From assembly GCA_001179505.1 (NCBI GenBank), contig CDMY01000973.1, positions 124,001-188,000 on the forward strand: DNA of 64,000 bases, written 5' to 3'. Shown here piece by piece: positions 58,364 to 64,000 of the stretch; the first letter of the stretch is position 1; each line of letters starts with the position of its first letter. This stretch comes from Vitrella brassicaformis CCMP3155. Taxonomy: Eukaryota; Protista; Chromerida. The position numbers and the translations under genes were made by a program. The notes beneath the pieces are model-generated. The model searched no databases. It saw only the letters and a list, made by a program, of their open reading frames with translations, and was not told the DNA's origin.

Positions 58364-60700
58364 TGGACAGAATGACCGGCGTGCGATGCTGGCATGCAGG
58401 CAGCGAGAGCCTGCCATAGCAAAACGGAGCATACAGGCAGGCAGGCAGGCAGGCAGGGAGGGAGCGAGACGTGGAGAGACCTACCCGCAACTAGAGAGAA
58501 CACAGAGAGACGTACACGCACGCACTAGAGCCGCCGATCCATCCATCCATCCGGGCAGCCTATGGGCCGTCCGTCGTCCGTTTGGGTAGAGAGGGCGATA
58601 GCATACAGACTGATATGATGGAGAGGGGGAGAGGGTGTGAGTAGGTAGGTAATACTAGAGAGATATGGAGAGGGGGACAGGCAGTCATGGGGAGTGTGTG
58701 CATTGCAATGCAGTCCATGCATCCATCAATCCATCCTAGCAGCGAGAGGGGAGACGACAAAACCTAGTCTAGCCTAGCCAGCACACCACCAGCCCACCGA
58801 TAGCCACACCAAACGATCCACCCATCCATCCATCCATCCAAAGATCCATCCAAAGATCCATCCCATCTACTCAGGCCGCCCCGCCTCCGCCCCTCCTACT
58901 CGCCCATCTACAGTACCAGGGACAACTGTCCACCACCCACACACCAAGCACACATGAGACAGAGAGACACAGAGAGAGAAAGAGAACCGCTCACACCTTC
59001 ACTCAAAAAAATGACATCTGCTCATCGACATGACGACGATCACGACACACCGACCGACCGACCGACCCTTTCCCTACTACGCCGACACGGCACACGGCAC
59101 ACGGCACACCAACCAAGCAAACAAGGCCGGAAGGGGTCCCGTGGAAATTCAATGAATGGATGGCATGCCGTGTGTGTGATGGATGGTGGTCAGCATGAAA
59201 AATACATTGAACGATCTTCGAGAAGCGACACGATTATCAACATACATCTGTAGGTAGGAGGCTGTACACAGCGAGACAGACAGACAGACAGACGGGCGAC
59301 GAGAGAGCGATCAGGTAGTGGCGAGACGGATGGACGGACAGGTCGGCAAGTAGGCATACGCGGCGCAAGCTTGCGAAATAGCATGGTGACAGTACCCTTA
59401 AGATGTGTGTCGGATCTGTGTCGGGTGTGTGTGCGTGTGATCAAAAAGTGCCACTCACGCACACATGGGTGCACTCATCATACAGGATGCAATGCCATGT
59501 GTGCCTCTCTCTTACGTGGATGGCGTGAGATGGGTGGCTGGGTGGGTGGAAAGCAGTGGGTGAGTGAGTACGAACATTCTTCTTCTGTCTGAGACCCCCA
59601 GAGCAATCGAATCAGTCTCTCTCTCCCGTGTCGATGGATGCCTGAATGCGTACGCAAGAAGGAGCCGCCAAAAAAAGGAACCACGCAGCTTCACTCACTC
59701 TATCACACGTCGGGCGGGGCGGGGTGGCGTGGGGTGGGGTGGGTGCCATCTATCCATCCGTCACCGTCTGCCATGTCATAGATGCAGACCGATCGATGCA
59801 CGACACGAGCCCGACCACCCATTCNNNNNNNNNNNNNNNNNNNNNNNNNNNNNNNNNNNNNNNNNNNNNNNNNNNNNNNNNNNNNNNNNNNNNNNNNNNN
59901 NNNNNNNNNNNNNNNNNNNNNNNNNNNNNNNNNNNNNNNNNNNNNNNNNNNNNNNNNNNNNNNNNNNNNNNNNNNNNNNNNNNNNNNNNNNNNNNNNNNN
60001 NNNNNNNNNNNNNNNNNNNNNNNNNNNNNNNNNNNNNNNNNNNNNNNNNNNNNNNNNNNNNNNNNNNNNNNNNNNNNNNNNNNNNNNNNNNNNNNNNNNN
60101 NNNNNNNNNNNNNNNNNNNNNNNNCCCCCCCCCCCCCCCCCCCCATCCATCCATCCATCCAGGCAGGCCGGCCGGCCGGCCAGCCGCTCTCCCCCTTTCC
60201 ATCCCTCCCCTCTCCCATGCATACACACCTACATCCATCCATCCATGTACGCAGCCATTGCGAGGTGAAGTAGCGTGCGGGTCATGCGAGTGACATCGCC
60301 ACCTTTTTGCCGCCTGCCGGCCGGCCGGCAGGCGACGCAGCGTGTCTGAGCAGACATACAGGCACACCATCTATCTCACGCGTGCAGGTGCAGGCAGACA
60401 GATGGACGAGTTAGTTGGTGAGGGCAGTGGGCGCATGGCATAGCATATACACACATCAACGAGCATGAGCAACATAGACAGCAACATGTCACGTCACGTC
60501 ATGTACCTACGAGTAAGACACTCAGCCAGTCTGTCTCTGTCTCTGTCCCCGTCTGCGTGGTGCTCCCACCCTCTACCCATCCATCCCTCCCTCCCTCCAT
60601 CCCTCGATCCATCCGCGTACAGACACTATGAAAGAGATGCTATCTGTCGTCTGTCTGTGGCTGAGAGACCTGCGGGAGGGCCACTCGAGTCACTGCGGTC
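57500..60700. repeat. Microsatellite-dense intergenic/UTR region ((CA)n, (ACAG)n, (ATCC)n, (GGCA)n)
   Basis: Many short tandem tracts and no ORF with coding-like composition. Lies between two convergent genes and contains a gap. Confidence 0.7.
59825..60123. other. Assembly gap (299 N)
   Basis: N run flanked by poly-C. Confidence 1.
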
Positions 60701-60702
60701 GG

Positions 60703-63700
60703 TCAAACTGGAAAGGGTGGCGTCGCCCCGATGATGAGGGGGATCTGCAGGCCCTCCGTCACAACCTCAGACTCCCTGCAAGCCAACCAGTCACACGAGT
60801 CACACAGACAGCCATGATTGATCACGTGCATCCACATGTGCGGCTTTATTCGCTCTGTACCAGATGTAGGTGAACTTGCCGACAGTGATGGAGTACAAGA
60901 AGAGCCGATCACCTGATCAAGCAGGACACACAGGAACAAGCGCGGTCGCACAGGGAGGTTCCAATCTGTCTGTCCAAACGAGTGTGTGACGCACCAGCAT
61001 CGTCTATAAAGTCAACCCCGAGACCGAAGTCCTCAGTCTCGACCTCGGCCGACCCCTGTGGGATACCGTCACCTCCCACACCAGCGCCCACTTGCACGTA
61101 CGTCACGCCCAGAACACCGAAACCCACTTGGATGAACACCTCTGTCGAAACCGAGTCGGGGAAATCGCCTGAACGAAGCACAACACACACAATGCAAGAC
61201 AGACAAAGACAGACTCATAGAGAGAGCGCTTTCCTCCCACCGTTGAGCACGAGCTGATAGCCGTCGGCCCAGTTACCTAATCACACACATCACAGGACAC
61301 ACATAGTCGGACAGGCAGACGTGACAAAGGCGGCATCTGTGTGTGTGTGTGTGTGTGTGGTTGTGACCCTGGAAATCGGTTTCTCTCTCGTCGAAGTCTC
61401 TGAGCACTGAGAACTGGTAGCCGAGCACACCAGTACTGACGGCGTATTCTGTGTCGTCGACGTCGGTACCGACGGCCACGGCCACCGACTTGTAGCCGGC
61501 AAACACCTCAGTCGCCAGCTCTTCGTCATCATCCACTGACGGGTCTTGCACATCGTCGAAATCGTGCCTGCAGCAAACATGCATGCCACAATTGATTGTT
61601 CACAATCCGCCACACCGGGGGATGCACGGACGCAGGGGATGCATGTGGTCCTTTTTCTCCCTCTCTCTCTGCCTCTCTCTGTACGTGTGTGTGTGGGGGG
61701 GGGGAGGGGATAAAGAGTGTGGTTCACCCACCTGACGGCGACCTCGGTGTTTCTGACTTTGACTCTTTGACCGTAGTCGCGATCGAGGATATCCACATTG
61801 GTACCTGACTCGACGCCACGGGCAACGACCTCGACGGCCGTCTGCCTGTCGTCCAAATCTTGATCGACCTATCCATCATACACACACAGAGAAGCAGGCA
61901 GCAAATGATTGACTGTGAGTGCGTCTCTCTCTCGTGGCTGGTGCTGTGTGTTTGGTGGGCATACTTACTCGCACACTGTAGGCCCCGTACGAGACACCGA
62001 CACCACCTTCCAGATCGCTCTCATCGGTGGACACCGACACACCGAGCTTGCCCCACCCCGTGTTGACCGATGTCTCTCGGTCAGCAAAACCGATACCAAC
62101 GCCCACGAAGCCAAAGTCGTTGCCGACCTGCACCGCCGTGTCGCCACCCGCCTCAAAATCTCGCCCCCACTAAGTGACGAAAAGAACGACACAAGATGGA
62201 CACAAATGAGATGGGCCGATTGCCTCCTTCCCTCACTCTCTCACCTGTACGGCCCAGTTGTCGTAAACAATCTCATTGGAAAGCTCAGTGATCAGCGTCT
62301 GCTGGTCCAGGTTCCACGGGTTCTGCGCCGTCACACCGAGGGCTGTTGGAAGCGGGCCGACCCTGCCGATGATTTGACCCTCGATCTCACCCACAGCAGC
62401 CGGTTTCCCCACCGCACCTCGCTTGTCAGCAGTAGCGGTAGGCACGGCCACAGCCGCCTTTGGTGGCGGCTTGTAGGGCTGCTGAGACTGCTGCTGCTGC
62501 TGTTGTTTGGCTGCCGATTTGTTGTCCCATGACTGCAGCCGCCGTCTCCTCCTCTGCAGGAACTGCTGGCTCCACGAACACTGCTCGTCCATGGATGTCC
62601 GGTTGGGGAAGGTCGCCATCATGCACTGGATGCTCATGCTGTCATGCTCTTCGAAGGCCATCGGCTTCATCGAAAAGACGATCCGGCCGGGCTCCTGCGT
62701 GTGGACGGTGAAGTTCATGAGCTCCTGGCTGGTGGGGCAGCCGTTGAGCACCAGGTGGTGCACACACGCGGGGTTGCTGCTCTGATAGCCCTCGGGACAT
62801 ACTGATGTCCACAGCAACGAACCAAGCACACCGTATATGGTGTCTGCTGTACCCATCGGATGCACACGTGGCCCAATCCTCACCTGCGTCACACAGCATG
62901 GGCCACGGATGAACGGCGCCGCCAACCACCGTTGACTCGAACACATAAGAACTGCACAGTAATGGAGCAAAGGGAAGACAATGCTCGTCCATCCATCCAT
63001 CCATCCGTCGGCTCACTCACTCGTCCTCATGGGCGATAGCGAGGGTCATGTTCTCGCCAGCCATGAGCTTGCTCGACAGCACGTGCCCCTGCGCCACCGG
63101 CTTGACGTCCTTGCCCAGCGGCTGCTTCCCCTCAAAAGCCCGGATGGCCTGCGCCTTATGCTCCCACTTGGCCGTCGGCGTGCACTTGCCGGTACTCTTC
63201 TTGCAGGCACAAGTCACAATGGCGTTGTTCATGGCGCCGTACACCCGCAACACATTCGAGTGGTAGACGTATTGGTCGGTCTCGGTCTTCGAGGTGGCGC
63301 ACTGCTTGGTTGAGAAATCTGCGGAAGCGATCAGCGCCGAAGCCTTGCCGGAAAAGAAGTCCTCAACAAAGGTCGCCCGGCAGGCCGGGTCGGCGGTGTT
63401 GTTGCGAAAGCCCCCCCGCCTCTCACCCTCCAGCACGGGGTCTCCGTGGACAGGGATGGCCGCAGTCATCTTGATGTCGCTGCACCATGCCACGGGCGGC
63501 AGCGTCTTGGGGACGCCCTTGGCCTTCAGCCACTGCTTAGCCGACCGAGGCTTATGGACACTCTTGCCACTGCCATTGTCGTCCTTTGTTGACGAGGCCG
63601 TCACAGTGCCGTCCCTGTTTTGCCGCCGAGAGCGCCTGTCGTTCCCTGGGAGAGCCTCACAGACGCATAGGAGCAAGAGCACAAGCATCCCCGCAGTGCC

Positions 63701-63736
63701 GGGTGACCGAATGACAGAATGGCGAAAGGGTGCCAT
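60703..63736 (-). CDS. Secreted protein with a ZP-N/ZP-C-like module, furin-like site and acidic beta-rich C-terminal region
   Basis: Signal peptide MLVLLLLCVCEA. Exons 63736-63021, 62951-62884 and 62801 onward splice in phase; further exons end in ..GLQIPLIIGATPPFPV* at 60703. Cys spacing and motifs NGCP, RIVFSMKPMAF, SIQC, RRRRR and VGPL match ZP hallmarks. Confidence 0.75.
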
Positions 63737-64000
63737 TCTGCCCGCCCGCTCCTCTCAATCAGCCAGCCGTCCTTGCGGGTGTGTGGAAGTAGATAGATAG
63801 GTGGGTGAATGAGGAGGGGCCGGGGAGGGAGAAGAACAGATAATCAGACGGACAGGACGTGGGAAGGGAGGGAAGAAGAGGAGAGCCCAGGTGGGGGTGG
63901 CGGTAGCTCTTTGGCCGCTGCCTTCCTTCTCCTCGCAAACTGCGCTGCCCACCTTGGTGGTTTATGCAGCGCCATCAGGCTTCCTTTCCGTACAGTGTAC

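Follow-up and report, generated by a model that had tools for sequence, protein, structure and literature searches.

The zona pellucida (ZP) modules of the animal polymerising proteins (ZP3, uromodulin, ZPD, GP2 and ZP1/ZP2) share a common order, a signal peptide followed by ZP-N, a linker and ZP-C, with conserved cysteines in both halves (4+4 or more), N-glycosylation sequons, a basic cleavage motif after ZP-C, an external hydrophobic patch (EHP) and a transmembrane or glycosylphosphatidylinositol (GPI) anchor. The ZP-C fold is also found in betaglycan (TGFBR3) and endoglin, receptors with a transmembrane helix that bind ligands of the TGF-beta family and provide a precedent for ZP modules used in binding, not in filaments. 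Unlike chromerids, choanoflagellates are closely related to animals. A review of 2026 treats the canonical two-part ZP module as a metazoan synapomorphy; beyond animals it recognises just the incomplete ZP-like domains of the choanoflagellate Salpingoeca rosetta, in which neither the complete two-part architecture nor the Cys pattern is present (PMC13361971). The gene described here lies on the minus strand (63736..60703) of a 64,000-nucleotide stretch of the chromerid Vitrella brassicaformis CCMP3155, a unicellular alga with kinship to malaria parasites (contig CDMY01000973.1, positions 124,001 to 188,000), hereafter the window, and on the predicted structures it very probably is a genuine Vitrella gene encoding a genuine ZP-type fold.

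The Vitrella protein resembles the animal polymerising ZP proteins in the order of its parts, in the conserved Cys residues of both halves, in the sequons and in the basic motif placed after ZP-C, and these proteins are its best structural matches. It differs from them in having 6+6 Cys, low sequence identity, a sub-threshold Pfam score and no recognisable EHP, in a conserved candidate cleavage motif that reads R-R-L, and in a spacer and a 290-aa beta domain that stand in a protein with neither transmembrane helix nor GPI signal, all of this in a non-animal organism. With betaglycan and endoglin it shares the ZP-C fold and no detected sequence relation; like the domains of S. rosetta it is ZP-like and occurs outside animals, and the Vitrella module has both halves. 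We consider it probable that the gene encodes a secreted precursor, composed of signal peptide, ZP-type module, R-R-L motif, spacer and beta domain, which would be anchored and then cleaved so that the ZP module is freed for a wall or matrix.

The first-pass annotation of the window had proposed a ZP-N plus ZP-C module from motifs alone, and the predicted fold agrees with this proposal. The AlphaFold2 model of residues 45-425 of the protein (database label P0015), built on an alignment of 12 sequences, contains two beta domains, with a predicted local distance difference test score (pLDDT) of ~85 at model residues 20-130 and ~75-80 at residues 180-300. In a Foldseek comparison with the PDB, ranks 1-26 were all occupied by ZP-module proteins (ZP3, uromodulin, ZPD, ZP1, endoglin), with ZP2 ZP-C, GP2 and betaglycan ZP-C found below rank 26; the best match was ZP3 (3nk3, E 5.1e-9), aligned over 280 columns across both domains. 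Single-domain chains gave TM scores of 0.56-0.61 at 4-5 A, the global TM scores being low because the mutual orientation of the two domains differs.

The two halves were also aligned separately with VIA-align. For the ZP-N half, Z was 8.8 against the ZP-N of uromodulin and 5.8-6.2 against that of ZP2 and ZP3, and the ZP-C half gave Z 7.3-9.4 (root-mean-square deviation, rmsd, 2.9-3.9 A over 108-132 residues) to betaglycan, ZPD, uromodulin, GP2, ZP3, ZP1, ZP2 and endoglin, the top match being betaglycan ZP-C (4ajv, Z 9.4); generic Ig and antibody domains did not exceed Z 5.4. Among the AlphaFold DB (AFDB) clusters, ZP proteins made up nearly all of the named matches in the top 30. The language-model features of ESM-Atlas (0.87-0.91), together with a structure search based on ESMFold, retrieved almost only PF00100 clusters, and this agreement is independent because the AlphaFold2 model is not used there. 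The models thus support a Cys-rich region that folds as ZP-N followed by ZP-C, with ZP proteins as the only strong structural matches.

By sequence, formal membership of a ZP family was not found. The ZP-C profile of Pfam (PF00100) aligned to residues 190-350 of P0015 with E 0.025 and a score of 15.1 bits, where 24.6 is required, to the raw open reading frame of exon 3 with E 0.05, and to one homologue with E 0.0075, the best value in the family; such sub-threshold matches came from excised ZP-C fragments only, at the correct region. Two paralogues, P0001 and P0009, are called 'ZP domain-containing protein' in UniRef, names which presumably derive from an automatic PROSITE rule. The idea of a ZP domain in this family is therefore already present in databases and is not wholly new, and what the models would add is that a ZP-type module exists outside the animals, combined there with another candidate cleavage motif and another C-terminal partner.

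Several results weigh against a ZP-type fold. The overall pLDDT of the model is 63, with an alignment of only 12 sequences behind it, and its two domains have no fixed arrangement (global rmsd 14-48 A). In the structural alignments the protein shares only 10-16% identity with ZP proteins, which leaves room for convergence of an Ig-like tandem. The PF00100 score just given is below its cutoff, Pfam recognised no ZP family in the full-length protein and ten homologues, and its ZP-N profile PF23344 gave no match; phmmer with the protein and hmmsearch with the family profile found nothing relevant among PDB sequences, and a profile made from the module alignment and run against 5.8 billion proteins, at E up to 10, retrieved family members only and no animal protein. 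A lineage-specific tandem of Cys-rich Ig-like sandwiches, which AlphaFold and Foldseek would have drawn towards the ZP structures of the training set, would be in keeping with the missing profile matches and the shallow alignment, and the VIA-align notes state that Z below 8 is common among unrelated folds. We regard this explanation as very unlikely, as each half resembles its own ZP counterpart and the order is correct, the Z values stand at 9 against 5 for generic Ig domains, the heads of the PDB and named AFDB lists are taken by ZP proteins, the language-model features concur without AlphaFold2, and the sub-threshold Pfam matches fall where ZP-C was placed.

Six Cys in the ZP-N half and six in the ZP-C half are conserved, or nearly so, in 12 homologous modules from at least five lineages, which by sequence comparison exceeds chance; their positions, taken without pairing, could accommodate C1-C4 and C5-C8 together with additional Cys. 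ZP-N closes with the element C-x-P-T-A-K-W-E (P0015 169-176, window 63184-63161), in which C169, A173, W175 and E176 are invariant in 12 of 12 sequences and which forms the sole invariant block of the whole module. We know of no counterpart in animal ZP modules, and the element may be a family-specific interdomain or assembly element.

The gene is larger than it first appeared. It does not stop near 62340, the lower limit of the module as first described (62340-63490), and seven more exons lead down to 60703; the gene comprises ten exons, ends with a stop codon at 60705-60703 and specifies 737 aa counted from the first ATG. In CEM38220.1 (P0015; UniRef A0A0G4H3M1; 721 aa), which bears the database name "Uncharacterized protein", the start is annotated one ATG further on, at 63688. 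Each of the nine introns has GT..AG borders; introns 1 and 2 occupy 63020-62952 and 62883-62802, and intron 3, of 75 nt (62244-62170), leads into the seven further exons. The two in-phase introns of the first-pass annotation are real, and the strings quoted there are all present in the spliced translation. The spliced model is 100% identical to P0015 from model Met17 to residue 714 and, when the last exon is added, equals it exactly down to its stop; the transcript-derived P0011 (from a 2.5-kb JGI contig) likewise agrees with it at 100% of 553 residues, across the 62244-62170 junction. A gene end at the in-frame TGA after ...AVQVRE (62233) was ruled out, since P0011 spans this intron.

Four public sequencing runs were compared with positions 60300-63900. 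In both RNA runs contigs carry the exon 1/exon 2 joint and the 62801/62884 joint, and contigs with joints at four further downstream introns and a loose end at a fifth were found, so that introns 1, 2, 4, 5, 6, 7 and 8 are backed by joints or loose ends. The contigs of the two DNA runs have no splice joints and are colinear with the window, and it follows that the gene is transcribed and spliced as read.

Chromerids live with corals, and an origin of the sequence in animal contamination or in a recent transfer from an animal has to be considered, though nothing that favours it was found. The exact match of the model to P0015 shows that the window is Vitrella, and animal contamination is excluded: the gene lies on a 232-kb Vitrella contig, its GC content (~58%, uniform over the window) and its short GT..AG introns are like those of the rest of the window, and it is present in the DNA runs at normal depth. 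Vitrella has six paralogues, and orthologues in at least five myzozoan lineages are fused to an apicomplexan-specific domain, which leaves contamination and recent transfer together a negligible probability. The first reading of the locus as a chromerid gene for a secreted protein, not an animal one, is borne out, and the gene is expressed.

Relatives were sought from several starting points. An exhaustive phmmer search with exon 1 against 1.84 billion representatives retrieved only six true relatives; its one other match, the forkhead-repeat protein P0003, was spurious. Word-indexed searches yielded further relatives. The module is present in at least six Vitrella paralogues (P0015, P0010, P0009, P0008, P0001, P0002), and also in Piridium sociabile, Rhytidocystis pertsovi, Selenidium serpulae, the TSA set GHVS01 and one Logan contig; by sequence, orthologues exist in early-branching apicomplexans. 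In AFDB, A0A023B6M6, which judging by its accession series may be a Gregarina protein, covers the two halves, the module with residues 27-312 and the C-terminal domain with 397-701. The C-terminal domain is the better conserved and more widespread part (58% mean column identity against 32% for the module); it also exists with no module attached in Toxoplasma (TGME49_287490), Hammondia, Neospora, Besnoitia, Alphamonas, Siedleckia and others.

The coccidian C-terminal-domain orthologues, P0024-P0028 (TGME49_287490, HHA_287490, BN1204_012690) and P0022 (BESB_047400), are unnamed hypothetical proteins, and a literature search on TGME49_287490 returned nothing relevant. The 405-aa Toxoplasma and Hammondia models look truncated at the N-terminus when compared with the 1324-aa Neospora model.

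The basic motif RRRRRL stands 8 residues after the last conserved Cys of ZP-C, where animal ZP proteins bear their cleavage site, and had been taken for a furin site. It is polybasic, and in five close Vitrella paralogues (RRRR-L or RRR-L) the R-run fits R-X-K/R-R. Over the whole family, however, the conserved unit is R-R-L, found as T-R-R-L, S-R-R-L, N-R-R-L, P-R-R-L, L-R-R-L and D-R-R-L, mostly with Q as the next residue. Of 16 members, 13 have it upstream of the C-terminal domain, where shuffling of these regions would lead one to expect 2.0, and a 17th, fragmentary member (P0033) has it too; among the carriers are members that lack a ZP module (Alphamonas, Siedleckia, Neospora, Besnoitia). 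In P0015 it corresponds to residues 332-334 of a protein with a signal peptide, which was assigned by inspection of the hydrophobic N-terminus and is the sole helix-type hydrophobic segment of the protein (Kyte-Doolittle 1.92 over 19 residues).

The protease ASP5 of Toxoplasma (TEXEL) strictly needs R-R-L at P3-P1 and can cut far from the N-terminus, at a C-terminal site, as in MYR1, where R-R-L is remote from the N-terminus and cleavage frees a C-terminal fragment of ~32 kDa (PMC4764566). The Vitrella protein and TEXEL substrates such as MYR1 have in common that they are secreted and contain an internal R-R-L, and they differ in the residues past Leu, Q-S/T/L/F here and A/S-E there. Vitrella aspartyl proteases are included in the protease tree of PMC8540915. 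Since R-R-L is conserved and matches the requirement of ASP5, a site of the ASP5/plasmepsin-V type fits at least as well as furin, and a cut of this type after Leu appears slightly more likely than a furin/Kex2-type cut after RR; whether the protein is cleaved at the RRL motif at all we judge evenly balanced. In the Neospora and Besnoitia models P/L-R-R-L-Q is found ~135 residues upstream of the C-terminal beta domain, which makes these proteins candidate unrecognised ASP5 substrates.

The string IIGRVGPLP was first read as an EHP, and this reading could not be upheld. It lies ~55 residues past the R-run within a low-complexity spacer whose size ranges among homologues from ~30 to ~390 aa, and it is conserved only in the two closest paralogues, G-P-L being present in P0015 and P0010 alone (2 of 12 modules). 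In the AlphaFold2 model it is disordered (pLDDT ~25), undocked and without contact to ZP-C. A few VIA-align alignments to EHP-containing ZP-C structures reach the last residues of the model, a low-confidence N-E-I-V-Y strand.

A precursor of the animal style, in which a furin-type convertase cuts after RRRR(R) and releases IIGRVGPLP as a polymerisation-blocking EHP, would explain the furin-like R-run of the close paralogues just past the last ZP-C Cys and the likeness of 'VGPL' to animal EHP strings, a likeness which comes from the knowledge invoked in the first-pass annotation. It is nonetheless doubtful, because beyond the close paralogues the motif becomes T/S/N/P-R-R-L, with no Arg at P4 and always with Leu, because R-R-L occurs where there is no ZP module, and because the candidate patch is rare, distant from the R-run and modelled as disordered.

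The C-terminal half was overlooked in the initial reading; it holds a conserved beta domain of ~290 aa in place of a transmembrane or GPI anchor. Its AlphaFold2 model (alignment of 17 sequences) has pLDDT 84 and a predicted template modelling score (pTM) of 0.61 and consists of 24 antiparallel strands of 7-10 residues joined by regular hairpins, the strands alternating between a hydrophobic (V/G/A/F) and a charged face. The domain is free of Cys in 17 of 17 homologues, and Gly amounts to 9-14% (13% in the window protein). Pfam found nothing consistent in the C-terminal domains of 17 members, and the Foldseek matches in the PDB were weak (OspA, VDAC and the ApoB100 belt, E 1e-3 or worse). In VIA-align over 48,161 chains the best match was MtrB, a barrel of 26 strands (Z 11.6, 251 residues, 4.9 A), followed by OspA variants, TCP10 sheets, LptD, TonB-dependent receptors, porins and VDAC, and the structure search of ESM-Atlas returned the beta-tacos of TamB/YdbH/DUF748 (TM score 0.52-0.69). 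The theme common to the best matches of the model is a large amphipathic, lipid-facing beta sheet, which may be a closed barrel or an open sheet. With such sheets (MtrB, LptD, porins, VDAC, TamB/YdbH, ApoB100) the domain shares the long antiparallel meander of 8-10-residue strands, a hydrophobic face, richness in Gly and absence of Cys; it differs from them in having no Pfam match and no significant sequence relation, and in a protein that uses the eukaryotic secretory route.

AFDB contains two clear homologues of the C-terminal domain, one of which, A0A1J4ME39, is named automatically after the Omp85/D15 barrel ('Bacterial surface antigen (D15) domain-containing protein'); the paralogue P0008 carries the automatic name 'Bacterial repeat domain-containing protein'. 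These two names hint at signatures of bacterial outer-membrane type in the domain, and Pfam on the 17 members did not reproduce them.

A Kyte-Doolittle scan detected neither a transmembrane helix nor a GPI-like tail in the protein, and with the beta domain at the C-terminus this puts the beta domain at the position of the animal ZP anchor, where it would tether the precursor. According to the anchored-precursor reading that we prefer, the protein would enter the secretory pathway, the hydrophobic face of the beta domain would hold it on a membrane or lipid surface in replacement of a transmembrane or GPI anchor, a protease of the secretory pathway would cut at RRRRR-L, and the freed ZP module would assemble into, or bind, an extracellular wall or matrix layer. 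That polymerisation depends on the cleavage is a tentative proposal and less likely than not.

Some observations speak against this sequence of events. R-R-L is missing from Piridium and two other members; no strand is docked confidently at the EHP position of the AlphaFold2 model, where the alignment of 12 sequences could hide one; and with a pTM of 0.61 the beta domain may be a closed barrel or an open sheet. To our knowledge, the eukaryotic secretory pathway has no machinery for inserting beta barrels.

A further possibility, which we hold to be rather unlikely, is that the ZP fold forms no filaments here and acts as a binding or adhesion domain like that of endoglin and betaglycan, the C-terminal domain being the central part and matured at RRL in the manner of dense-granule proteins of Toxoplasma. 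The far better conservation and wider distribution of the C-terminal domain, the association of RRL with this domain and not with the module, the absence of a detectable EHP and the place of betaglycan ZP-C at the head of the VIA-align list are all in keeping with such a role. Against it, the matches to the filament-formers ZP3, uromodulin, ZPD and GP2 are equally strong, and for an alga that builds walls the possession of six paralogues would agree better with a structural part in the matrix.

The layout of the Vitrella protein, a passenger followed by a C-terminal beta domain, is reminiscent of autotransporters. The most extended form of the anchored-precursor reading, in which the ZP module pre-dates the chromerid/apicomplexan split (through deep ancestry or an ancient transfer to or from animals) and is thus no animal invention, and in which an 'autotransporter-like' precursor, tethered by a self-inserting 24-strand beta barrel or sheet in place of a transmembrane or GPI anchor, is released at R-R-L by a TEXEL-type aspartyl protease in place of furin and builds the cyst or sporangium wall, seems improbable when taken as a whole.

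Full-text literature searches found no paper in which ZP domains are linked to Vitrella, chromerids, apicomplexans or oocyst walls. If a chromerid family with early-apicomplexan orthologues does have a complete ZP-type module, the origin of ZP-type matrix assembly would have to be reconsidered, the options being deep ancestry, convergence, and an ancient transfer in which animals and the symbionts or parasites living with them were the partners. As a non-animal test system, the family could show which features, such as the cleavage site, the EHP and the anchor, polymerisation needs. A second outcome is the definition of a pan-apicomplexan beta domain, so far uncharacterised, tied to R-R-L and present in Toxoplasma (TGME49_287490), Neospora, Besnoitia and Hammondia. 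The distribution of the motif suggests that processing of the TEXEL type may be older than parasitism and not confined to host-targeted effectors. The coordinates of the features are collected below.

Table. Features of the ZP-like gene of V. brassicaformis, in window coordinates; residue numbers are those of P0015.
Feature	Position in the window	Strand	Basis or remark
Coding region, exons 1-5	63736-63021, 62951-62884, 62801-62245, 62169-61969, 61868-61732	minus	
Coding region, exons 6-10 (stop included)	61567-61368, 61276-61241, 61168-60995, 60912-60861, 60775-60703	minus	
Signal peptide region, MAPFRHSVIRSPGTAG-MLVLLLLCVCEALPG	63644..63736	minus	hydrophobicity and inspection
ZP-N-like domain, ~62-175	63164..63505	minus	AlphaFold2 pLDDT ~85, VIA-align, Cys 69/103/130/160/162/169
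WCSDIKMTAAIP	63487-63452	minus	spliced translation
DPAC	63391-63380	minus	spliced translation
KQC...HSNVL	63307-63248	minus	spliced translation
IVTC	63220-63209	minus	spliced translation
Interdomain linker, ~176-191	63116..63163	minus	low pLDDT, 47-59
ZP-C-like domain, ~192-329	62551..63115, split by introns 1 and 2	minus	VIA-align, Cys 243/247/258/267/305/320
LMAGENMTLAI	63067-63035	minus	spliced translation
MLCDA	62899-62885	minus	spliced translation
VCPEGYQSSNPAC	62884-62764, across intron 2	minus	spliced translation
HHLVLNGCP	62760-62734	minus	spliced translation
RIVFSMKPMAF	62685-62653	minus	spliced translation
SIQC	62634-62623	minus	spliced translation
EQC	62586-62578	minus	spliced translation
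RRRRRL, 329-334, candidate processing site	62536..62553	minus	8 residues past the last ZP-C Cys
RRRRRLQ	62553-62533	minus	spliced translation
Low-complexity spacer (Q-run, P/A-rich; holds IIGRVGPLP)	62296..62532	minus	pLDDT 22-32
IIGRVGPLP	62373-62347	minus	spliced translation
C-terminal domain of ~290 aa, 415-705	60754..62295	minus	AlphaFold2, 24 antiparallel beta strands

Some features of the locus concern the assembly. The (CAG/CTG)n stretch coding for the Q-run (62478-62598) shows raised DNA depth, and a loose end at 62481 is common to DNA and RNA runs, which together indicate similar repeat-flanked sequence elsewhere in the genome. Exon 5 (61752-61872) has a DNA-run depth 2-3x higher and a second contig with 3-4 differences (61815 G>A, 61827 G>C, 61839 C>G), and one RNA contig departs from the window at 60860 with a continuation that is not present in the window and translates as ESEVVPDNLD, the C-terminus of the paralogue P0010; the short-read assemblies thus collapse or chain near-identical paralogue exons. 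RNA and DNA contigs both diverge from the window at 60554 with an identical loose end, which suggests that assembly and reads differ there. A run of N (assembly gap) extends over ~59780-60200, just downstream of the 3' end of the gene, and there are (GT)n/(CA)n and (CT)n microsatellites within introns 5 and 6 (61330-61360, 61650-61715).

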